A DNA stretch of 64,000 nt from Amoeboaphelidium protococcarum X5 (taxonomy: Eukaryota; Fungi; Aphelidiomycota), in the NCBI GenBank assembly GCA_023515725.1, contig JALDTO010000213.1:1-64000 (forward strand), given 5' to 3'. Below the pieces are notes generated by a model. That model made no database searches. It was given only the letters and a program-made list of their open reading frames with translations, and was not told where the DNA came from. A program made the position numbers and the translations under genes. Shown here one piece after another: positions 13,169 through 41,466 of this stretch (position 1 is the stretch's first letter; every line of letters begins with the position of its first letter).

Positions 13169-13958
13169 AATGCCAACTGATCGCGCTTGACTCAGAAACG
13201 ACTTTGAGCACTGCGCAAGAACGAGAGGAAAGTGATCAGTGATGGAATAAACGACGACCACAGCACGGAACTGTACTGTCTGAATCGTCTTCAGCCTATT
13301 TATGTACTCTTAAATTGCAAATCTATGTAGTATCAGACACTTATATACACTATCAAGTTGTTGGTAGACCCCAGGACAGAGATTTATGGACTCAGCTGAG
13401 TTACTTTGAGGTAGACATTTTACGAAAGTTGCCTACAAGTAAAACGCGTACCATACAGGAAACAGCTAAAGCCGTGTGATACAATGCTCTGTGGTCATTA
13501 CTCACTCTTTTAAATTCCTAAGTCTATGACTGAGCTGAGAATATGTGGTTGCTGGATGTTCAGTAGTGTTGTGTTTGTAAGCCTCGGTTTGAAACATTTT
13601 CGACTGGATGATTTGTTGCACGATCGTTAAGTATCACTGTTTACCGCATTTAGCACAGGAAAGGTAACACAGTGGGTGAGAAAGAAGCCACCATATTCTT
13701 ACGATAACAAAATGTCAACAAATAAACCACTTAATTGTATAACTTATTTTCGATTAAAACGCGTATAACTCCTAAAAATTTGCATCTTCTGACTTCAGTG
13801 ATTGCTTTCGAGGAACTACCAACTCTACTCCGCTTTTCTTTGAAATTGTCGTTGTTGATTGAAGTAGAATCAGACGCGTTATATTAATTGTTTGCCTGAA
13901 CAAGACTAGCATCTAGGGATATTTGAGTATTTAAACTGAATAAGATCGAATACAGTAC

Positions 13959-26796: not shown

Positions 26797-27918
26797 TCAA
26801 TTAACTTTACTTTTAGTCTTGGTCTATCTAGTCCGTCTATCATCACCATTGACATCTTAAGAACTAATTTTAGAAGTATTCAGACTCTATACTATTTTAG
26901 ATCTTCGTGTCATGAAAGCTTCTAAGCCAATCCCAGTAAATACAACACCGACGGCGACCCATTGACTGAGATTAAGTTGATGATTGAACCAGAACACGGA
27001 CAGTATCATGGACAGCATCTTTCGAGTGACATTGACCGTAACGAGAATCAGAGAGCCAAATCTCTCCAAAGTGTAGAAGATGAACAACTATCCAACTGAA
27101 CCGAAGAAGCCAAATATTACCACATCAACCACAGAATCTGGATAAGTGGACAAGAACTTCAAAGCTTCTAACAAGGCATTTGAACCGTCCGCACTCATGA
27201 TAGGAGTAATTGAACCCAGGTAGAATAACATCAAGAGCGATGATATGAGATTCATGTAAAACATCATATGAGCCCCGTTCACCTCTTTATACCGACTAAA
27301 GATATTATCCTATGTACTGTTAGTGACTCCATCAAGGAGTAAATTAATAGCGAGAAGAACAAGTCCATACACACTATTTTATCGCGCATCGACAGTACCA
27401 AGCTTGGCGGGATGCATGAAGGTGAATATACACACGCCGGCAGTGATCAAAAGAACACTAGCATACTTGTACCATTCGTGAACTTTGCGATACAGCACAT
27501 AGCTCATTATGATAACTGGAAGCAGTTTACAGCTCTTCGCTAGTATCATTGTGGGATAATCGACATGCTTCAGACTCTCATAACCAAATGGAGATGCAAT
27601 CGTAGAGAGAACGGCCACCTTGACAAAATCCAGCAAGAGTTGAGCGGATGGCTTTAAAAGCAGAGATTCAGATTACCCAGCAACTTTTACAGTTGGCGTT
27701 CGCCGCTATCTTAAATACATATAGACTATAGACACTATGCTGGCAATGAATGCTTACAAACAATTCAAGAACACGAAATGCTTAAAGTATGCTGGCTAAT
27801 GCTACTTCAAATGGTCATCATGCGCATAGTACGGCGTAGTGGACACTCGCTCCTACAGCAGTCCCCAAGAAAGGAAGCATCCATAAATTCCAGCGATACA
27901 AAATGCCAACTCATACAT
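26797..27918 (-). CDS. HUT1: Nucleotide-sugar transporter Hut1/SLC35B1
   Basis: CIAGIYGCFLSWGLLQERV, SLKHVDYPTMILAKSCKLLPV, LDGVTNSTQD, VTVNVTRKMLS. Confidence 0.9.
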
Positions 27919-28059
27919 TTTAGTTCCACTAACAATGAGTCGATATCTCGTTCTCCAATGCTTTATCGTATTGTATTAGGAGAAAGCTTTTAGATTGAAT
28001 GAAAGAGAGAGCGACGATTCAAGTAAAGGAAAATCTCTATCATGTTAAATAAAAGTCTA

Positions 28060-29021
28060 TCATTGTTGCATTTCCTGACGAATTGAATCTTGCATTCCAT
28101 TGGAGCTGAATGGTTAATGCCACGCTATTTCCTCAGCACATCCACCGCTCAAATCGCAGCTCTATGAGCAAGTATAGATCATAATACTACCAAAATCCAG
28201 AGATTTCGCGTCTCGATGATCAAGTCCGAGATAGTTGAGAATTTGGGGCATCAGTTAGAATTCAAATGATCTCTCAGATTTGCAGTTTGGACAATGCGGT
28301 ATATCTTTTGGTAGTGGAATATTCTACTCGCTCACATATAATGGCTCAGGATTAGAACATTCTACAGAACGCGCATACCGTAGCACCTAATCCAGATCGT
28401 TCCTAATTCTCTTTTGAAACTTTAAAAACATTCGATCGACACCAGTCTCACTATCCTCACACTCTTCCATTGCATCATCGTTGTTGATATCATCTGTATT
28501 AAAGGGAGCGGTCAGTTTCTAGGCAGCTAATGCTCTGGCAACATCATCTGCAGTATCCGTATTGATTGATGATTCCTCTTCAGACACTATGAAGCTTTCT
28601 TAGTAAGGAGAATCACTAACCAGATCGCTCATATTCTCAATACTATCACAGATTACATCTTCAGCCCATTAAGCTCGAATTACACGGATAGCTTCATTTT
28701 TACCTTCAATCATACAAGTTGAATCGCGGCACACAAAGACGTAGATCACTCGGTGAAACGCGTAATTATCCACTTCATCATCTGGAGCATACAACTGCAG
28801 TAGCAGATTCATCAATTTACCACATCTTCCACATAAACAATGATCTAATTTGAATTTGTTATTCTGATCTTTTGGTGCAGTCTACATGAGAGATTTATCA
28901 ACTGTAAATTTGTACGTATGAAAATAATGGATGTGATTACCGGTAACCCACCAATTTTACTGACAGTCAAATCCACAATGTCAGGTCGCTCAGTATCAAC
29001 AAATCCCAATACGACAGTCAT
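28060..29021 (-). CDS. TSR4: PDCD2/Tsr4-family protein, 1 intron
   Basis: MTVVLGF..SKIGGLP^..CGRCGKLMNLLLQLYAP..HRVIYVFVC..FQLMPQIL..LDFGSIMIYTC. Confidence 0.85.
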
Positions 29022-29339
29022 AATCTCGTATTTATGCGCAGTAGATATTTGATTGCGATGATACTACGGCAGTCTGCTAAAACTTTTTAAGATTTTCCAT
29101 AATCAAAGCTCACGCGCGTATGCTCTGGGGCGTTTCAGAAACCTTTCATCTGTCCTCTCATGATTCCTTTCTTCCCCCATTCAACAACAGTCGTTTCATC
29201 ATTCCTGGTTGAAACAACTTCTGCTTCCAAAGACTTTCATTGCTAATACTTTGGTATTGTATCATATAGATAGATTCCTTGTTTAATCTAGGTGCAGAGT
29301 TTAGATAGAGTATTGCTTTTTATTAAATTCTTTAAATTC

Positions 29340-31094
29340 ATGTCTAGACCGACTACTGGAAAGAGTGGAGGTGGTAGTATTCACCGTACTTCTAGTGTTC
29401 GGGCGTTTGGTAGAGACTTGGCTCAGTCGCAGAAGATTGCTATTGCTGCATCAAACACGGAGCGGAAACACTCTAGTGATGGTTTGACCAAGAATTTTTA
29501 TGAAGATAGTTTTCGGCCTGTCTATGAACCAATGAAGAACAGTTAGTCATCACCTCCACCTCCACCTCCTGCTTCTTCTGCACTAAAATCCACCTCTATT
29601 TAAAACTCTTTGAGTAGAAGTTTTAGCTCTTACAGTAATAATAACAATAACAATGATTATAGAGATGGTAATTATGTTTATAAGTAGAAGCATGTTGATT
29701 CTCCTCGTACATCTCCCAGAAAGACTAATGCATCTTCCTTCAGTAGTTAGAGTAACAATGAGTTGGAGTCTCTTCGTGGCCAGATATCACTGTTAGAGTC
29801 TAGTAATGAGTAATTACAGTCTAGATTGGACAGTATGTAGAAAGATTTCAGCCAGGCGTTGAATAGATAGTAAGCATCATTTTAATCCAAGCTTGATCAG
29901 GTGGTGGATAGTTAGAACTCCATGTCCAGAGATTAGAATCATAGTAATAGTTTGCATATGAAATGTAAAACTATGGAGCAGTAATTGCGTTAGTTGGAGA
30001 ATTTATTCAACACTATGCAAAGATAGAATGACTCTGGTCAAGTGGCACGATTAGAAAAGATGGTGGATAGACTTGGTTCTTAGGTATCAAGCTTAGAATA
30101 GCAGATATAGCAGCAGTCATCTGTTAGTTCTCAACAGTCTAGATTACAGAATCTACTAAATGCTGTGCAAAGCAAATTGGTCGAGATTGAGAACAAGCTG
30201 TATGATCAAGAGAAGCAGCTGTCCGTTTATAATATACCTGGATTGAACAAGGCCATGGCAAAGCTATAAACTGAATATTCAGCCATTGAGCAGAATCAAG
30301 AGTTTTTAAATTAAAAGATGACTAGAGTGGATGCTCTTGCTAAATAAGTAAAGTAGTTGCAGACTTCTCTTGAGAATGAATAATCATAATATGTGCGTAA
30401 TTCTAGGCAATTTGCAGATTATGATGAGAATGAAATCTTTGAGTAGCTGGAATCTTTGAATGAAATTGTCAGAAAGTTGGATGAGAGAATCTCTTTATCA
30501 GAGTAGAAGCTGCACGAGGAGCTTATCGTGAATTTGAAAAAGATTATGGCATAGATTTCAAAGTTGTAAAGTGGCAATTAAAATGCAGAAGATTCTATTC
30601 AATCCTCGTCAGTACATCATCAAGAAATTACTATGCTTCGCGACGAACTGGCTTCGATAAAGAAGCAAATCTCTGCTCGCGGACTATCCCAGACAGACAC
30701 CAAATGGAAAGATTCGATTGAGAATAGAGTGAAAGTTTTGGAGAATATGGTCCACAATGTAGCATCCACTGTCACTGCTGATGGCCGCTCTAACAAGATT
30801 TAAAAATCATCTTCCCTCATTGTTACAGTCAATGAACCTGAGAATGATATCAACTATGTGAAAAGAAGCACTCTCCTCAGTCCTACTGATGCTTACTCGT
30901 CTCTGAAACGACCAAGTGCCAGACAGAATGAAGCTGCGAGCAGAGAGTCATTGATGTTTATCGGAAGTAATTACGCACTCGATCAGGAATAAAGACCAAC
31001 GATGGGCAGTGACGAGTATCTGTAGAATGAGCCGTTTCTTGAAGATTTAAATGAGTTGGAGGAAGGTCATACTCTAGTGAATGAAGATTAATGA
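29340..31094 (+). CDS. Hypothetical coiled-coil protein (~584 aa)
   Basis: Long TAR=Gln frame with heptad-rich centre and Ser/Pro-rich N-terminus; no family recognised. Confidence 0.65.
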
Positions 31095-31270
31095 TATTAA
31101 TAGTTTGTGCTAATTACCTTGTTATATTTCACGCATGAAACTTTATTACAATGATCAAAACCAACAGTAGCTCTTTATCATAATTTAAGATTTTTATAGT
31201 GTATGATTGCAATTGAGTAGTTTACATATTCAAGAACAGTGCGTCACACTCTTGCAAGACTGAACTATAA

Positions 31271-32313
31271 ATGACCGCGTTTTTAGTAATTTCTGAAACA
31301 GAAACTTGTTCCTTTTTTGATGTTTCAAAAGAACTGGAAAAAACTCGTCGAGACAATGCAATGCAGACTGAAATATTTGAAAATGTCATGATACAACTGG
31401 AACAGCTGACTCGTAAAGTGATTAATAATTCTATAGAATCTAGAGATCTTAAGTCGTAATTAGAGAATCTGATGTCGCAGTGTGGGAGCGAGTTTTAGGA
31501 TAACCCATTCAATCATTGGTTCTTATATCTGGCAATCAAGTCTGATTAGAAAGAGATTTGGGATTTAATTTTACATTATGTGCTACAACTAGATAATAAA
31601 GGGCTTAAGATCAATGAGAATAATGATATAATGGAAGAGCATAATGCCATGACTGATTCAGTTAAATGGCAAATGATGAAACAATCTGGACTTGCTGATT
31701 TCGTCCCTCGATCTTCTTTACACTAACACTCGGATATATAGGATATTAATGCTTTAGTTAGTAATCTATTGATGCATCGTTAACATGTGTAAGTTAATAG
31801 TATATTACATGCCTTGAAAGATAATCCTTAGTTGAGTTTGTCAATTCAAATGACATAATAAGATTTTCAAGAGTTGCTCGCTGCACATAGAAATCTCTGT
31901 ATCAGCATAGTGTAATGCTTGTAACAATTTAATGCATTCGATCACTTGCTCCATTGGACTAATCTCACACTATCATGCTTTGAAGTTCATCTCCAATTGT
32001 TGAGGGATGATGTGATAGGCATGTAAGAAATTCACTTAATATTCAGTGACTCGATATCAAAACTGGAACGTGTCACTGATCAAGTTGAAAAAGTTCGATA
32101 AGTCCGACTTGTAAGAATTTATTTATATTCAATCGATAGTAATAATATGATGATTAGATTTTGTAGATTTGTATGTTTGTCAGGTAGCTAATGACACAAA
32201 AGGACAAGATCAGTATTGCAGATTTAAGGTATGCTCTTGACCCATTTCTAGTGGAGCATTCTCGAGTTCCTGAGGCTGTGGAGTTGTATAAACGGCTTCT
32301 CGCTATAACATGA
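31271..32313 (+). CDS. Hypothetical helical protein, probable 1 intron
   Basis: Open frame from ATG 31271; GTAAGA...TTGTAG intron at about 32111-32166 leads to TGA at 32311-32313. Confidence 0.5.
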
Positions 32314-32364
32314 TGATAGTGGAAAAGCAATAAAAGTATAGCAACAATATACAAATCAGTTTAG

Positions 32365-33144
32365 TCACCCAGAGCTGTTCATTGATAGCAAATACTATTA
32401 AATTTCAGGGAATTCGCAAATGGACGCATATGATATAGGAGTCTCCCCTTCACTATCCTCTGCGTTGATGTCAGCACCACACTCTCCGACAAGATACTTT
32501 ACAATTTCCAAGTTCCCTTGATCAACAGCATGATGAAGTAATGATGTATTACAAGAATCACGTACTTGTATATTGTCTTTATTAACCAATTCCCGTACTT
32601 GAGTCAAATCACCAGCAAGCACAGCTTAGAACAAACGATTAATCTCAGGATTTTGGCTGAACTTCTCGTCACTTTAACCATCCTCCGCTCTCTTTTCAGC
32701 ACTATTACTCGGTGAAGTATCAAATGATGGTAATTGCTAGTCTTATGCGGGTTATTATGTTAGAGAACTGCCAGGCGATGATGGATTAAAACCAAGATCA
32801 TTCTTCACCAGATCCAGGTATCGTCGCTGAGCTTCTTCTTTATCCATATCACCTAAATCTTACCATGCCTTCTACTTGGCCTCCTGCGCATTCAAAGGAC
32901 CAATGACGCTGGACACGATACTCAACAGCCTCCCAGTCCATGTGGAATTCCTCTCCTCCTGCTCATCCATATCCGTGGCACGGGCAAACTCATCGTCTGC
33001 ATACCTCCCGCTAGTACCCTGCTTGTACAGCGCATACAACTGCAAGCGAGTACTGTTAGATAAATGGCCCAGCTTTCCATCGACCGCTTGCTGTTAAACG
33101 AACTGAGACGCTCTCTTGAAATCGGTACTCAGTTATGCGGACAT
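32365..33144 (-). CDS. ACBD6: Acyl-CoA-binding plus ankyrin repeat protein (ACBD6-like, 259 aa)
   Basis: RLQLYALYKQGTSG..KQKAWQDLGDMDKEEAQRRY; ankyrin SLLHHAVDQGNLEIVKYLV..EGETPI. Confidence 0.85.
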
Positions 33145-33424
33145 TTCCAACGTGTGTTGTTGTATCAAACAGAAACAAAGATCTACACGCCGCGCGTCCT
33201 CATTAAAAACCTGAAACTGATAATGATTTGATGATGGTTGGTATCAAGTGATATATTTAAATTATAAAAGTATCTTAATAATAGTATAGCTATAAGCATA
33301 AAACATGAAGTTGATTCAAATACTCTAGTGTGAACACAAGTCAATAGTTACGGAATCTATTTTCTTTTCTCCGTAGCAAACCATCAAAACGTTTGAAAAT
33401 TGATCAAATATCGAATAAGAGAAA

Positions 33425-34525
33425 ATGGTGACAATGGAAAGTCTTGACGTGGAATAGACATAGATTTTAGACGTATAGTCCGCCGAGTAGCAGTAAATTC
33501 CTAAAATCAGTGATATTGATAAGCTGAAGGTGAAGGATAGAAAGAGAAAGTCTGATGGTGGTGCATTATCTGAGCGCGATGCTAAAAAGAAGCTTCGTCA
33601 AGAGCGAAAGCTGAAGAAGAAGCTCAAGGTATCAGAGCTATTGGAGTTACCCGTGGAAGATATTAGTTCTGGCGGCGCATTAAACCCGGAGAAGAAGTAG
33701 AAATACAATAATAATTTGGGTGTTTGGATTGGAAATCTCGCCTTCAGTACCAAGGCTGAGTAGTTGAAAAAGTTCTTGATATCGCATCAGACTACACCAT
33801 CTGCCATTACGCGTTTGAAAATGCCACATTAAAAGTTGAGTGGTTAGGAGCTTTTTAATAAAGGATTTGCTAAAGTGTACTTTGAGTCTGAAGATGGTGT
33901 CACCTAGGCGGTGGCATTGTCTGAATCAGACTTTGAAGGTAGAAAGCTGCTAATCAAGCGGATAGATAATTTTGAAGGCCGACCTGATGAAGAGTCGCGC
34001 GTTAACGGCGGTGAGGATGGTAATGGTAAGAAATCAGGCAAATCCACTCACCTAGTACCAAACACAAAGATATTTATTGGTAATCTGCCATTTGATACCA
34101 AGCTGGCGGATGTTCAGTAATGGTTCTCGCAGTATGGCCCGATTGCAAATGTTCGTCTCGCTCAGTTTGAAGACTCTGGAAAGTGTCGCGGATTTGGCCA
34201 TGTTATCTATTACCATCTGGAGTCGGCTAAATCTGTTATCAATGCATCTACCCAAGGACTTTTGAAGGTGGAGTTTAAACGCAAGAGTCAGGATGATTAA
34301 TCCACACCAGCTGAGAGCGTAGAGTGTAGAGTCAAAGTGGAGTATGGAGCTAAACACGACGCCAAGACGTTCTCTAATGTCAAGAGAAATCGTGATTAAA
34401 ATAGGTCGGGATTTTAAGATAGGCATGCTCGACGCGATAATTATCGAGTTGAAGAGGATCCACCTGCTATTTAATAGTAGTAGAAGCCCCAAAATACAAA
34501 GATTGTGTTTAGCGACGATGACTGA
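33425..34525 (+). CDS. NOP13: Nucleolar two-RRM protein (Nop13-like, 366 aa)
   Basis: GVWIGNLAFST, NKGFA, GRKLLIK..FEGRP, IFIGNLPFD, SGKCRGFGHV, C-terminal KIVFSDDD. Confidence 0.8.
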
Positions 34526-34683
34526 TAGATACAGTAAGCCGCTGTCACCATGAGTGAAATCTTTAATAAAAATCAAAAGTACACCTAAACAGACATAATA
34601 TATATTCACATTCTATTTGAAATTCCCCTCAACTAGTCCATAAGTCCACGCATCAATCCGCCCATCAGTCAAATGTTATAAGC

Positions 34684-35227
34684 TCATGCTCGACCACCAC
34701 TAACTAAAGATGAGAAATTTGATGTAAAGTCAAATGGGGAAAGCTTACCTTCTTTCTACAAACGAGGCCTGGCCATGGACGAGGAAGACTGAGGATTCAT
34801 TTTCTATGCATTATATCCGGCCGTGGTGGATGATGTAGCTCCAATAGGTGGAATGTAATCACTGGCTGATGATGTTGATCTCTCGGCCAACTCCTCCTCT
34901 CGAGCCACTTTGGCATTGAGCCAACTTTACCAAGAGCAAAACACCAGAAAGAAGGCGTAAACCGCTGCAGCTATAAAGCAATTATTCGCAGCATTTTCAG
35001 TGTCTTCAATAGGTTCCTTGCCTTAAGTGAGAACGTGGTTGCCTTACTTTATAAGAGATCCCAACACTAACTACATTAATTGTGATAAAAGATACATGTT
35101 AGTGGATGTAAGTTTAGCTGTAATATAATCTCAACAATAATAATAACAATCATACCAAGAATACAATGCCAAAGGCACTAAGTCCAGAACAATAAATAGA
35201 CTATATCCGACTAAAATACGGCTTCAT
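34684..35227 (-). CDS. RNASEK: V-ATPase subunit f / RNASEK-like two-TM protein with C-terminal extension, 1 intron
   Basis: MKP..YCSGLSAFGIVFL^LVLGSL..AANNCFIAAAVYAFFLVFCSWQ. Confidence 0.75.
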
Positions 35228-35588
35228 AATACTATACTCTTGGACTCTATATATTTATTTATGCAGGATTTTACACGACAAAAGAACGATTGAACTACGA
35301 GCTGAAAGAGATTGTGTGCGCGAAAGACTTCTTCCCACCTGAAGAAGGGACGAGATTACCAGAGCAAAAAGAGAGAAGAGAAAATCGAGAGAGTTGTCGT
35401 TGTCGACTTTATTCTGATTCTGTCTCTGAAAAAGATTTTTCTCCCGACTTTGTTCGTTAAAAATTCCGCCGCCTGCCAACTATCACATTTCTCTTTCCTT
35501 TCGTTCCTTTGACGCTACTAATCATCAACATTATTACTTATCATTTACAGTAAGGTTTTCTGATAATAAATAAAGACTATTATATAAA

Positions 35589-35945
35589 ATGCCGGGAAAT
35601 ATGCCATTGCTGGAGGTGGACAACTGGTTGCACCAGGTTACTTGCTTGTATGCTGCAGCCATTCCAATATATATCTTTGTGAACAATCACCTGGGTCCAA
35701 AGACGATGGAGCCAATGTTCTGCCGTGATTTCCTCATGTCTCACTTTGAGAAGATTGCCTCTTCTCCGTCTGCAGTCTAGGCTGCTCAAGCTGGTTCCTC
35801 ATCATCTGCCACTACTGCATCATTTGTGCCAAAGCTGTAAAAGTTGCCATTTGCCAGATTTGGTAATGCCGCTTTCGGTAGTGGAAATGTTCGTTCCCGC
35901 GTCGCTGGAATCACCATGAAGGGATTGGCTGCTCTCTTTAAATGA
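35589..35945 (+). CDS. Candidate nucleus-encoded ATP synthase subunit 8 with C-terminal extension (118 aa)
   Basis: From Met at 35601, MPLLEVDNWLHQVTCLYAAAIPIYIFVNNHLGPKTMEPMFCRDF aligns without gaps to the fungal Atp8 pattern (M1 P2 L4 Q12 T14 P33 R42 F44); contains TAG and TAA read as Gln. Confidence 0.6.
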
Positions 35946-36397
35946 GAATTTTATGGATTACTATTGGAATCATATGAAATAAATGCAGATCTAGTTCTCT
36001 AGTACAGTTTTCAGTCTTTGTACATTTGGATGTAACATTACAATGGTAGAAAGTTGATACTTTAACTAGTGCTCGTAATTTCATACCACTGTCAGTTACC
36101 GCAATACAACACGCCGATCACAGATATGATTCAGAATGTTAAGTACGACGTAAATCTCTTAAAACAAGTACACGCATATATGCGATATCGCCTAATTGTC
36201 ACTTTAAAATTAAACTAAATGATATCAAAGTTGAACCAAGGGCGCGCGTGTAGGGACTATTCATCAACTTTCGAGTTGCGTCTGCGAGCTTTTTTATCTC
36301 TTTGCCGTTGTTACTCAGAGGTGTTGCACGTAAAATTACAGTCGCTGTCGTCAAAATTATTTCATTAACTCGCGTTAATATCCTAAGCAAAAGCTTT

Positions 36398-37423
36398 ATG
36401 AGCATGGTGTCAAAAGCAAAGAAGATTGGTACGCATAGTGGCACGTTCCATGCGGATGAGAGCTTGGCGTGTTGGATGTTGAAGCAGACTAAAGAGTTTG
36501 CCGATGCAGAGATTGTCCGCTCCCGTGACCCGTCTGTACTTGATCAGTGTGATATTCTGGTGGATGTGGGTGGTGTCTATGATCCAGCGAAGCATAGATA
36601 TGATCATCATTAGAGGGAATTTAATGAGTTAATGTCTATCGGCGGCACTGATTACAAGGTTACCAAATTGTCCTCTGCCGGTCTTATCTATCGTCACTTT
36701 GGTAAAGAGGTGTTGTAGAGCATCATGGATGACAACAGTTAAATCGCCGGATTGACTGCAGGGGCTGACTACAAGGCTAATATTGATGTGGTCTACAAAA
36801 AGGTTTACGATGACTTTATCGAGGCTATGGACGCTATCGATAATGGAGTTTCGCGTTACCCAGACACGGTGAAGGGCAAGTACCGTGAGAGTACACACCT
36901 ATCTGCTCGTGTTGGACGCCTCAATCCATGGTGGAATCAGGATGACTCTGATATGGATGAACGCTTTGCCAGAGCAATGTAGATTTGTGGCGAAGAGTTG
37001 AGAGAACGCGTACTGTTCATATCTAAAGCATGGCTACCAGCAAGAGACTTGGTGAAGAAGGCGCTGGATGATCGGTACAAGGTGGATAAGAGTGGAAAGA
37101 TTATGGTGTTTGATCAATCGCTGCCTTGGAAAGAGCATCTGTTCGACCTTGAACAGGGTCTGGACATCTATGAAGAACGACCACTGTATGCTCTATATCC
37201 TGATTAGAGTAACAAATGGCGTGTGCAATGCATTCCCCTCTAAAGTGAAGGATTTACCAACCGTAAGCCTCTGCCTGAGTCATGGCGTGGGCTGCGTGAC
37301 GAAGCTCTGTCTCAGCACATTGGTATCCCTGGATGTATATTCGTACACGCTGCCGGCTTCATTGGTGGTAACGCTACTAAGGAAGGAACTCTATAGATGG
37401 CTATTAAGGCTGTCTAAAGTTGA
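36398..37423 (+). CDS. MYG1: MYG1 exonuclease (341 aa)
   Basis: [62 protein letters not shown]. Confidence 0.95.
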
Positions 37424-37573
37424 TCATTGCTCATGTGAAGATTAAAATATGAAAATCGCTTTTAAATATGATAGTGAGCGTATTAAACTTGATCGCAGCT
37501 TTAACATGATTTTTTTACTTCAATCTTCTCTCTTGTTATTTCATCGCGCGTTGCAACTTTTAAGTCGTCAAGT

Positions 37574-39005
37574 ATGAAGCATTTATTATAGTCAATCACA
37601 TCCACCATTCTCTTGCTGGCTTTGATGCTAGCACAAGTTTGTGCATCATCAGCTGTTACTGGTACGTTAGTTAAGTAGGTGCTAGTAGTTGCAGATAAGG
37701 GAAGCGTGGCAGAAGTGGAAAAGGATTACAGCTAGTTCTGGTCTCAGCTGAAGAGTATGTCCTATATACCGTTGTCGTTATCAATTTGTTAAATCTTTAT
37801 GTGTAGAGCGAGATTATAATTTGACTTTTGCTGATGTATCCACCGCTGAGTTGTTCAAATATGGTTAGAAGACGTGCGATAACTTGATCTTGTTCTCACC
37901 TGAAGTCAAGTCGTTGGGTGGCAGCAGTAGTAAGTTTAGTGCTGGCGATGTTATTGATTTTGTCGGTCAGGGAGGTAATGTGCTGCTGACTGCATCATCC
38001 ACTTCTGGCTCGGTAGTTCGTAAGCTGGCTCTGGAATATGGTTTTGAATTGGATCCCAGTGGTACTTTATTAGCAGGAGCGAGCGACAAAATTGTGGATA
38101 AGTCTTTAGATGCTGAGTATGGTGGGGGTAAGAAGACTGTTCTAAAGGTGGATGTTGATTCCGAGTTGCCATTCCTTACCAAGTCTGGTGGTAGTGGTTA
38201 GGTGTTATTCCACGGTATTGGACATCGCTTGGTGGAGCATAACAACTTGGTGTTCCCTGGCTTGAAAGTGGATTCTACTTCAGTCGATATTATTGACTCC
38301 AAGACTGGTAATAAGAAGAAGAGTACCGGCGATAATAAAGACAATGTTCTAGTAGGTCTGTCATAGGCGAGGAACAATGCAAGGGTGGCATTTACCGGTT
38401 CTATGGCCATGTTTTCTGATAAGTTTATGAAAGCTGATGACAAAAGTGGCAATGCTCAAGTTATATCTCAATTGACCAGTTGGCTATTCCAGGAAGTTGG
38501 TCAGATCAGAGTAAAGTCTGTAAGCCACCATAGATTGAATGAGAAGAAGCCACTGAAATAGTACAGAATCAAGGATCCTTTTGTGTATGAGATTGAACTG
38601 GAAGAATTAGTTAACGGTAAATGGCGCCCATTTTAGTTGCCATCCAAGGATGATAAAGTGCAGTTGGAGTTTGTAATGCTGGATCCATTTATCAGAACTA
38701 ATCTGGTGCCTTCGCAGGGTGGAAAGTTTGTGACGCGTCCAGATTTGATCCTGCCTGATGTCCACGGCGTGTACACCCTCAAGGTGGAGTATAAGCGCAG
38801 AGGTTACTCATACATTGTGCAGAAGGATGTGGTTAGTATCGTACCGTTTAGACATAATGAATATCCGCGATTTCTCGTAGCTGCGTACCCCTATTATGCT
38901 AGCGTGGGACTGAGTATGGGTGTTTTCATCTTATTCACCTTGTTCTATCTGTATTATCAAGATCCAAGTGTAACATCAGCGAATGAAGGCAAGAAGAAGA
39001 AATGA
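37574..39005 (+). CDS. WBP1: Oligosaccharyltransferase subunit Wbp1/DDOST, 1 intron
   Basis: Signal peptide, QARNNARVAFTGS, VQLEFVMLDPFIR, LPDVHGVYTLKVEYKRRGYS, TM followed by KKKK ER-retrieval end. Confidence 0.9.
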
Positions 39006-39158
39006 TTGATTATTATCAGGATTGACATTTAGTACCAATCGTAAATCACAACACTTTCAATTCACCAAGAATTGTTATTAACATTTACATCAAGATTAAA
39101 TTCTTTATATTACAGCCGTGATCGCAATCAATTAAACTACATCAAACAATTCAAAGTT

Positions 39159-41093
39159 TCACTTTTTGATCTTGTAGAACTAAGTCATAAAGTGAATTTT
39201 GGTGCAGATTTCCTGAGCCTCGGACGGAGACTAAGCATCAAATTCATACGTCTTGGTATCCTACTTGCCATTATCTTTCACGATAACCATTTTGAACGTG
39301 GTACTCTTCTTGGCCTGTTTACAACTCACTATATTCGCTATATGGAATGAGACAGTCTTGACCGAGTCGAAAAAGTTTCGATTCTCCGGCGGCATAAAGT
39401 AGATGTAATCACCATCTATGGCCATGATGCGCTCAATCTTGGACATTATCATTGGCATCTTACGTGTAACATTGTATCGCTTGTACACACTAGTATACTC
39501 ATCCGGAATATACTGAGGCTCATCATAATCTACATCCTGCTCCATCTCTTCCGGTGGCCGCAAGAATATATCTCCAGCAGATGGACCTCGATCTTTTTTC
39601 AACAGGCAGAGCTCCGTAAGTCCAGATGCTCCTATTGTTTTATCCAGAGGAACATCCGTCTTGGTATCAGCCATCTTCAACGTATAATCAGACGGATCAA
39701 TCTTTCTCTTCTTGGCACAGAACGCAAGAACATCTCCCAGAAGCATATCCGCAGGCACAGATACCGTAGTAGTCTACTTAACTTCTAGAGTACTGTACAA
39801 ATGAACTTTGATAAATAGTAGTGATGATCGAACATTTGGATTTCTATTCAGATCCATCATTGATAGCGACTAATCAGGTCTGTTGTTGTTGTTATTGTTA
39901 GATTTACTTGCAGATATCGGAGGTAGAGGAGTTTTGCCACTAACAGGAGCAGGAGCATTCCTCTTATCACTACCGGTAACATTAGGACCGAAAGCAAAAC
40001 TCTATCCAGACTACTATTACTATTATTACTATTGCTATTCTTACCGCTGCTTCTAAAGCTTCTATTGCATATTCTCACTAGGACATACGGCAAACTGGTC
40101 AAATGCAAACTTTTAAATTTTTCTATTCCTCTCCAGAGCAGGAAAATCCTCATCCACTTCCCCCTCATCTTCCACTATCCTTAGATTCCAAAACTGAACC
40201 AACTATTTACCATCCGAGTTACTACTGGCAATAGCGGGCAATCTCTTCTCTTCCACATAGCAGTAGAGAGCATATCCAACCACATCTTCCACCGATGCAT
40301 CACGCTTGACCACTATAATACTAGCCTTGGTAGCCTGGGCCGATGATGGAAAGTATATGCGCAGAGTTACAGGAGCCAGATCACCTCTACCACAAATATG
40401 ACTATAATCTTTAAATGGATTCGAATTCTGAGCACCACTCTTAACTTTGGCCGTCAGCAGAGATTTAGTCTGCTGCACTGGGACAACTTGGACTGGTGTA
40501 AATTCCAACAACTAAGCTTTTATAGCATTCAGACTATCTGCAGATTTCAACTTTTCGAGTGATGCTTTATCTGGAATAGGTGGTGGTTATGGTAGAGCAA
40601 TCGCAGTTTATTATTATTATTACTACTACTACTATCGCAGATCCTTCTTACTAGTGTTGACACCTTGAGTTTAATCCACTCTAGATTACTACAATTGTTA
40701 AGACTAATGCTAGCCAACTCTGAGCTTGTTAATCTTCAAAACATCACTAGTAATATGCTAGATATTAGGACTATAACACATACTCTTCTCTTTAACATCC
40801 TCAGTCACATATGCATTCTGATAATCAAAGAACAAACTCTACTACTACTACTACTACTACTATTATACAGAAGAAGTATTCTAATCACCGGCAGCGGAGT
40901 AATTTTACAATGTGATCTCCATCGAATCACTATCAAGACTTCCTGAGATACTCTGCTATTACTACTATTGCTATCTTAGAGTTGGATCAATATTGGGGAA
41001 GGTGATAATACGTTCAGCCAGAGGATCATCACTCTTTAAGTACATGGATCTAATCTACTGAATAGTCCACTCTGTATCAGTAATCAAAGACAT
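39159..41093 (-). CDS. SIN1: TORC2 subunit Sin1/Avo1
   Basis: MSLITD..IQQIRSMYL; CRIM domain LRIYFP..VEDVVGYALY..WNLRIVEDEGEVDEDFPALER; PH domain YKRYNVTRK..ERIMAIDGDYIYFMP. Confidence 0.9.
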
Positions 41094-41466
41094 TATTATT
41101 CTTGCAACAACTTAATAGCTTCTTAGGAATGAGAAGATGGAATAACTAAAAGATATTATTGCACAGATTGCAACTTTTAGACAACTACCAGCAATAGTAA
41201 AACGTCCAATTTCCTTATTGAAACGAACAGAAGAAGAAGAAAAGGAAACGACAAGAAGAGTTGGGAGAAGGAACGAGAGTTTCTATTAGTAAGAAAGCCA
41301 AAGGATCTCTCTTGTCGTTCTCCCCCCTTTACAGTATTGTTCTTCTTTTCTTGAGTGCTAATAGCAAAGAAGATAGAATTTTGTGATTTTATTCCATACG
41401 GGGAATCTAATTTATCATACTAAGTACTGATTCAAAGCAGAATTTATAATCTGTCTCGCTTAATAA

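Follow-up and report, generated by a model that had tools for sequence, protein, structure and literature searches.

When atp8, the gene for subunit 8 of the mitochondrial ATP synthase, is missing from a mitochondrial genome, has it been lost or has it moved to the nucleus? In opisthokonts the gene is normally encoded in mitochondrial DNA (mtDNA), as the initial annotation of the locus described here rightly stated, and nuclear-encoded versions are already known from outside that group (ASA5 and ATPTB13; PMC10214729). The literature on Holomycota describes the ‘loss’ of ATP8 in sanchytrids and Rozella (PMC8371127), atp8 is likewise reported as ‘lost’ in many animals (PMC5446695, PMC11384887), and searches for a nuclear copy in animals have failed (PMC11384887). 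The question is raised by a short gene at positions 35589–35945 on the forward strand of a 64,000-nucleotide (nt) stretch, hereafter the window, from the aphelid Amoeboaphelidium protococcarum (GenBank contig JALDTO010000213.1, C212 in our numbering). We show that this gene is real, expressed, conserved, nuclear and under purifying selection, and we argue that it probably encodes ATP synthase subunit 8 (ATP8, also known as A6L), transferred from mtDNA in a lineage that includes Amoeboaphelidium. That identity is the best-supported reading of four lines of computational evidence: homology between profiles, the absence of atp8 from mtDNA, reduced hydrophobicity and the reality of the gene. From it we infer the protein’s location in the ATP synthase, its topology and its import route. 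We found no report of a nuclear atp8 for any opisthokont, in a literature search that did not cover the original description of the A. protococcarum genomes.

The coding sequence specifies 118 residues (the full-length protein is database entry P0018) and belongs to a small family. An exhaustive HMMER search of 1.84 billion representatives recovered seven clusters of relatives, 92–125 amino acids (aa) long, and a profile search of 5.8 billion proteins recovered 17 family members, which are unnamed without exception and derive from metagenomes or run assemblies. P0018 itself is among the 17; the other 16 are orthologues at 41–65% identity. All begin with a leader of 0–4 residues, which is MG, MS, MGG, MHG or MSGG in the relatives and M-P-G-N here (35589–35600), followed by an invariant Met-Pro. 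Next come x-(L/F/M)-E-x-x-N-W-L-H-Q, a weakly hydrophobic helix, the block N-N-x-L-G-P-K-x-x-E-P-x-F-C-R-D-F-L-M-A-H-F-E-K-I, a variable linker rich in Ser, Ala and Thr, and a tail in which a Pro/Lys motif ending F-A-R precedes a short C-terminal helix.

We compared this family with a reference set of 33 N-termini taken from loci around atp6 homologues and consisting of mitochondrial ATP8/YMF19 and alphaproteobacterial subunit b′, the latter being precomputed PF02326 hits of which most also match PF05933. Profile–profile alignment with hhalign joined the two with a probability of 87% (P = 3.8e-6, score 30.9; P = 1.6e-5 in an independent run). The alignment comprises 42 gapless columns that start at the Met-Pro and pair family residues 5–46 (35601–35726) with ATP8 residues 1–42; the positions in common are M1, P2, L4, an acidic residue at 5, an aromatic residue at 9, Q12, an aromatic residue at 24, L31, P33, K/R34 and R42. 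When we used a hidden Markov model (HMM) of the first 60 ATP8/b′ residues, every family member aligned from HMM position 1, exactly at its Met-Pro. In 300 trials of a null model in which the Met stayed in place and columns were permuted only inside their own hydropathy block, the score averaged 11.6 (standard deviation 2.7) and never exceeded 23.3, compared with the observed 30.9.

The reverse search gave a consistent picture. Against 10,293 six-frame open reading frames (ORFs) from 788 kb of mitochondrial and alphaproteobacterial DNA, 41 of which are ATP8/b′, the family HMM placed ATP8/b′ ORFs at ranks 1–6 and at 15 of the top 30 positions. Because these ORFs are homologous to one another, the result counts as one family ranking first and not as many independent events. 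Judged at the level of profiles, the family appears homologous to ATP8/b′ N-termini. The comparison with ATP8 profiles that had been suggested as a check gave a mixed result, favourable in profile–profile matching and negative for the Pfam models considered below. A gapless register with yeast Atp8 over residues 5–48 had also been claimed. The fungal comparison, which used one yeast-type Atp8 only (L103:10947–11090, 48 aa), gives the same register and nearly the same identities: it aligns without gaps to residues 5–52 of the aphelid protein, with ten identities (M1, P2, L4, Q12, V13, T14, F26, P33, R42 and F44).

The alternative that survives best is that the gene encodes a lineage-specific small membrane protein unrelated to ATP8, whose N-terminal resemblance reflects chance or the convergence of short hydrophobic N-termini; such a protein might be a translocase, belong to the endoplasmic reticulum or peroxisome, or serve as an accessory subunit in some other respiratory complex. 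Several observations favour it, or at least count against ATP8. A Pfam scan of the ORF pieces and seven homologues, at E values up to 10, assigned no family, with PF05933, PF00895 and PF02326 all silent; searches of the PDB with the protein sequence and with the family profile returned no relevant chain, and an ESM Atlas look-up of one full-length homologue gave no usable match. Only 17 members exist among the 5.8 billion proteins searched. Single-sequence scores against the ATP8/b′ HMM are weak (16.8 bits for the best member, 8.2 bits for this protein), and the hhalign P value, once corrected for about 10,000 proteins, corresponds to a borderline E of about 0.04–0.16.

The motifs and the fungal comparison add to these difficulties. 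At the MPQL motif, every member keeps Met, Pro and an acidic residue at position 5 and has L, F or M at position 4, but none has Gln3, where L, V or I stands instead, and W15 is lost; nothing in the ATP8/b′ set corresponds to the conserved block after the helix or to the tail motif. The family HMM misses the yeast-type Atp8, ranking it 1,693rd, and hhalign of the family with that protein alone is weak (P = 0.0017) and produces a different, gapped alignment, which makes the family look closer to the ancestral (protist and bacterial) type than to the yeast type. At 118 aa, the protein is also much longer than the 48-aa fungal Atp8. Finally, a scan of the assembly (23.6 Mb in 346 contigs) with the ATP8/b′ profile, which was not exhaustive, scored two candidates only, each of them the string ‘WMPQLVWL’ read out of frame within an amino-acid transporter gene. 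We rejected these two, as we did the only Pfam hits of a whole-genome scan in which PF05933 and PF02326 found nothing and PF00895 gave two sub-threshold matches; the stronger of these contains a TGA stop, neither stretch is ATP8-like, and both are spurious.

Three results speak against an unrelated protein. The alignment is gapless from the Met-Pro of both families and scores above all 300 hydropathy-preserving shuffles; ATP8/b′ ORFs fill the top six places against a background of real sequences rich in membrane proteins; and atp8 is the one standard mitochondrial gene missing from the mtDNA of this lineage. We regard an unrelated protein as improbable, although it deserves to be taken seriously. 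The functional transfer of atp8 to the nucleus that was originally put forward is accordingly the best-supported explanation of the locus but not a proven one, given the silent Pfam models and the weak single-sequence scores.

The anatomy of the protein fits subunit 8 in outline, as a single membrane helix is predicted directly after the N-terminal motif and the C-terminal part is basic. Kyte–Doolittle windows and an AlphaFold2 model place the predicted membrane helix at residues 13–31 (35625–35681); the hydrophobic window spans residues 9–31 in the Met-Pro register. The lower hydrophobicity of this segment, which the initial annotation had noticed, was borne out by measurement: the best 19-residue window scores 1.46 in this protein and 1.23 on average in the family, compared with a mean of 2.13 in the ATP8/b′ set and 2.23 in one fungal Atp8. 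AlphaFold2, run on an alignment of 13 sequences, predicts a helix at residues 7–58, disorder at 63–100 and a second helix at 101–117, with a mean predicted local distance difference test (pLDDT) score of 59 that rises to 71–84 over residues 11–40 and falls below 50 over residues 63–100. A complex prediction of residues 1–66 with the organism’s own Atp6 returned a score of 0.00, but the fold of the partner was itself uncertain, and we counted this result neither way.

Downstream of the helix, the family-conserved segment occupies 35682–35762 (in this protein’s family alignments the Ala of its L-M-A-H is a variable position) and contains the invariant residues N32, N33, P37, E41, F44, D47 and F53. 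It gives way to a poorly conserved linker rich in Ser, Ala and Thr that is predicted to be disordered (35763–35825), and then to a C-terminal tail at 35826–35942 with the family motif F-x-P...L-P-K-x-x-F-A-R and a terminal helix at residues 101–117. An Ala/Ser linker leading to a basic, acid-free tail had been described from the sequence, and the counts agree: the 62 residues after ‘FEKI’ include seven Lys or Arg and no Asp or Glu. In the 12 members with an intact tail, the corresponding part is 44–75 residues long, with 7–10 Lys or Arg and 0–2 Asp or Glu.

If the nuclear gene is ATP8, mtDNA should lack its own copy. The mtDNA contig (C346) has 28,427 bp, 22.6% GC and a 68-nt terminal overlap, which shows that the mtDNA is a complete circle of about 28.4 kb. 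Encoded on it are atp6, atp9, cob, cox1–3 and nad genes, and the conserved genes specify Trp as TGG, not TGA. Its Atp6 matches the UniRef entry for A. protococcarum at 100% identity, which identifies the organism as this species or a very close strain. No ORF in this complete mtDNA scores against the ATP8 HMM, and the sole frame that starts Met-Pro-(Q/L/H/E)-(L/M/I/F) lies inside atp6. We also examined 13–20 kb of each of seven related mitochondrial contigs, whose Atp6 proteins are 54–65% identical to that of the aphelid (every other group reaches about 40% at most), and found no ATP8-like ORF in them; the same scans did find atp8 in stramenopile-type and yeast-type mtDNAs. The absence of atp8 from mtDNA, which had been proposed as a check, therefore holds for the complete mtDNA of the species and for the stretches read of the seven related contigs. 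The mitochondrial ATP synthase structures and subunit surveys that we consulted include subunit 8 (PMC10214729, PMC6930080, PMC4980432), and because this extends to the divergent ATP synthases analysed (PMC10214729, PMC6930080), a nuclear copy is expected when mtDNA has no atp8.

The mtDNA nevertheless bears on a second alternative, in which the nuclear gene does derive from ATP8 but the working subunit 8 is an unrecognizable mitochondrial ORF, such as the one at 1401–1874 on the reverse strand, leaving the nuclear copy redundant or with another role. The mtDNA has unassigned ORFs without a Pfam match, and ATP8, which is well known for its divergence, has gone unnoticed in many mitogenomes (PMC11384887, PMC5446695). 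On the other hand, the unassigned ORFs begin like duplicated 5′ ends of nad1 (MIK-LLII..), none of them begins with Met-Pro or obtains a score with the ATP8 HMM, and no conserved candidate occurs in the seven related contigs; the nuclear gene, for its part, is under purifying selection and its transcripts are abundant. We consider this alternative very unlikely.

The mitochondrial contigs have further features of their own. The two frames with nad1-like N-termini (MIK-LLII...) and no Pfam match, at 1222–1347(−) (41 codons) and 1401–1874(−) (157 codons) of C346, look like partial copies of the 5′ end of nad1. ARAGORN detected four transfer RNA (tRNA) genes only in the mtDNA, for Trp (anticodon CCA), Gln, Asn and Tyr (L006:5641–6226), which implies large-scale tRNA import. 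Three aphelid-like mitochondrial contigs from metagenomes contain fragments of a B-family DNA polymerase (PF03175), at 13296–15148 of L016, 2876–3668 and 12632–13201 of L101, and 7504–8196 of L109; these look like remnants of linear-plasmid insertions, and L101 also has a duplicated block holding a 380-codon ORF.

We also considered whether the protein could be a subunit b or b′ (PF00430, PF05405), an identity that we rejected. Instead of a long coiled-coil stalk, a disordered linker and a short helix follow residue 58. Mitochondrial-type subunit b (PF05405) is a separate nuclear gene present in two homeologous copies (C233 and C214), so the gene described here is not subunit b.

The gene itself is well established. 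Its reading frame starts at the ATG at 35589 and ends at the TGA at 35943–35945, and it contains an in-frame TAG at 35778–35780 (codon 64) and an in-frame TAA at 35838–35840 (codon 84), both read as Gln. TGA is the only stop codon in this genome: under the standard code the window has four ORFs of at least 150 aa (797 aa in total), whereas with TGA as the sole stop it has 68 (23,627 aa in total), one of them 3,082 aa long. The initial annotation, which had taken the two TAR (TAG or TAA) codons as a sign of nuclear coding, read them correctly.

A second copy lies on contig C192, with DNA 90% identical over 700 bases and with the frame and both TAR codons intact. Between these homeologues, the coding sequence differs by seven synonymous and three conservative changes and by one 6-nt in-frame indel in the linker, giving a ratio of non-synonymous to synonymous change (pN/pS) of 0.13. 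Identity is 96% in the coding sequence and 88% overall in the 3′ untranslated region (UTR; 35946–35988), compared with 78% in the upstream and 84% in the downstream flank, both of which contain indels. The similarity extends beyond the gene, as the region 33900–37600 is about 90% identical to C192:612305–616005, most of the indels falling between genes. Together with the two copies of the subunit b gene, this two-copy region fits a hybrid or highly heterozygous genome.

Contigs from public runs delimit a short, unspliced mRNA at 35556–35988 on the forward strand, with a 5′ UTR of at least 20–33 nt and a 3′ UTR of about 43 nt. Transcript-like contigs span 35569–35987 and 35569–35914 (the runs we label X5 and X4), 35556–35988 (X1, a freshwater metatranscriptome) and 35540–35785 (X2). 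None of the contigs from these four runs falls on 35300–35539 or 35997–36328, and coverage resumes at about 36329, in the next gene; a covered gene with bare flanks is the pattern expected of transcripts. The contigs contain no joints, and hence the gene has no intron. An AATAAA hexamer at 35978–35983, 4–5 nt before the 3′ ends of the transcript contigs and unchanged in the homeologue, is a likely polyadenylation signal. The word depth of the gene is several-fold higher than that of the neighbouring MYG1, contig depth being a rough guide only, and the variants in the transcript contigs are synonymous except for T76S, in the linker. For MYG1 itself, the transcript contigs start close to position 36329 and so include about 69 nt ahead of the ATG at 36398, which bears on a possible non-AUG presequence of that gene at 36296–36400.

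Conservation reaches beyond the species. One orthologue lies on a 138-kb metagenome scaffold (L015) among ordinary eukaryotic nuclear genes, in the same order and orientation as in the window: UAA transporter, PDCD2, RRM protein, ATP8-like gene, MYG1, OST48 and AVO1. This shared gene order links positions 1–20333 of the scaffold, which is of freshwater origin, with 26800–41400 of the window; most of the shared proteins are 32–55% identical, and a short match in the UBL of AVO1 reaches 73%. The called genes of the scaffold have no in-frame stops, and it appears to come from an uncultured aphelid relative that uses standard stop codons. Long spurious ORFs are common in a genome in which only TGA is a stop, and many in the window overlap real genes in other frames, but a chance open frame in intergenic DNA is refuted here by a pN/pS of 0.13 between homeologues, an only indel that stays in frame, a discrete transcript and 16 orthologues, one of them syntenic.

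How would such a protein reach its place? It would be translated in the cytosol from a short and abundant mRNA that has no intron, and a leader of 2–4 residues would keep the ancestral Met-Pro internal. When Pro follows the initiator Met, that Met is cleaved off by methionine aminopeptidase in the cytosol; we therefore suggest that the leader would preserve the Met of Met-Pro. An invariant internal Met-Pro behind a short, variable leader also fits a gene that once started at that Met. There is no N-terminal presequence, as had been noted; the first 11 residues include Glu and Asp and not one basic residue. Inner-membrane proteins that have been relocated to the nucleus must avoid mis-targeting and stay importable, which constrains their hydrophobicity, and the weakly hydrophobic helix fits this constraint. 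In the assembled enzyme, the ‘MPxLE..W..Q’ segment and the membrane helix would be neighbours of subunit a, and the N-terminus would face the intermembrane space. Solved ATP synthase structures show the N-terminal end of subunit 8 on that side, lining the mouth of the lumenal proton half-channel, with the helix of subunit 8 next to subunit a and clamped by subunit d (PMC6930080, PMC4980432). The net charge of the tail, +5 to +7, fits a location in the matrix.

The other part of the initial proposal, a presequence-like C-terminal tail that drives import with the C-terminus first, gained no support. The basic, acid-free composition fits, but an amphipathic helix of the presequence type was not detected: the best 14-residue helical moment in the last 32 residues did not rise above that of shuffled tails in any of the 16 members scored (the fraction of shuffles reaching the observed moment was 0.12–0.77). 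In many family members the C-terminus is instead a hydrophobic stretch rich in Gly and Ala and flanked by basic residues, which could form a second helix, either embedded in the membrane or binding another subunit. Granted that the protein is ATP8, we see tail-first import as a tentative idea that is more doubtful than not. The full scenario commands slightly less of our confidence: a first natural relocation of atp8 in an opisthokont, with a leader, a de-hydrophobized helix and a tail that acts as a matrix-targeting element, entering C-terminus first and arresting its N-terminus in the intermembrane space.

A nuclear atp8 in an aphelid, a member of the sister group of Fungi, would mean that ‘losses’ from mtDNA can be transfers. 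Allotopic ATP8 has so far been engineered only with N-terminal presequences (PMC11629202, PMC7729113), and the aphelid protein, if it is ATP8, would be a natural solution to ATP8 import. It would further reveal the marks of a transferred copy: a leader, a less hydrophobic membrane helix and a tail rich in basic residues. Should the full scenario hold, the protein would also be a natural template for allotopic expression, and it would give a search image with which to look for the atp8 genes described as ‘lost’ in Rozella, sanchytrids, nematodes, flatworms and chaetognaths. The family profile could be used to search lineages without a mitochondrial atp8.

Import signals at the C-terminus or within the protein are known from yeast, in the C-terminal signal of Hmi1p and the internal signal of Bcs1. 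The aphelid protein is similar in having no N-terminal presequence and a basic, acid-free region C-terminal to its membrane helix, and import led by its tail would yield the N-out, C-in topology of ATP8; it differs in that its tail has no amphipathic moment above shuffles and in that many of its relatives end in a hydrophobic stretch rich in Gly and Ala.

Closer comparisons are with the protein families to which the N-terminus aligns. Alphaproteobacterial b′ N-termini (PF00430) are the best-scoring relatives of the family HMM and share its register, but b′ continues as a 100-residue coiled coil that reaches F1, whereas the aphelid protein has no such region and subunit b is encoded elsewhere. 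Some b′ proteins carry ‘GGMPQL’ after a signal peptide, resembling the aphelid ‘MGGMP’ start; in SAR11-like b′ (P0144, P0186, P0187 and similar), a signal-peptide-like leader ends ‘...AESGGMPQL’, so that Met-Pro is internal there too. The Gly-Gly before Met-Pro in these and in aphelids is probably a coincidence. With mitochondrial ATP8 (A6L, YMF19; PF05933, PF00895, PF02326), the aphelid protein shares Met-Pro-x-Leu-acidic, an aromatic residue at 9, Gln12, a single helix immediately afterwards, then Pro33, Lys/Arg34 and Arg42 in one gapless register, and a basic C-terminal part. It is unlike mitochondrial ATP8 in being encoded in the nucleus with TAR codons for Gln, in the leader before Met-Pro, in having Leu, Val or Ile for Gln3 and no Trp15, in the much lower hydrophobicity of its helix (1.23 versus 2.13), and in the additional block after the helix and the 44–75-residue, nearly acid-free tail.

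The nearest parallels in terms of gene history are ASA5 of chlorophycean algae and ATPTB13 of kinetoplastids, nuclear-encoded forms of subunit 8 that were recognized only by sensitive profile and structural comparison (PMC10214729). The likeness, which we draw from their published description, is that of a natural relocation of subunit 8 to the nucleus. In those lineages the mitochondrial genome has been drastically reduced and the ATP synthase is highly divergent, whereas in the aphelid atp6 and atp9 stay in the mtDNA and the host is an opisthokont, sister to Fungi.

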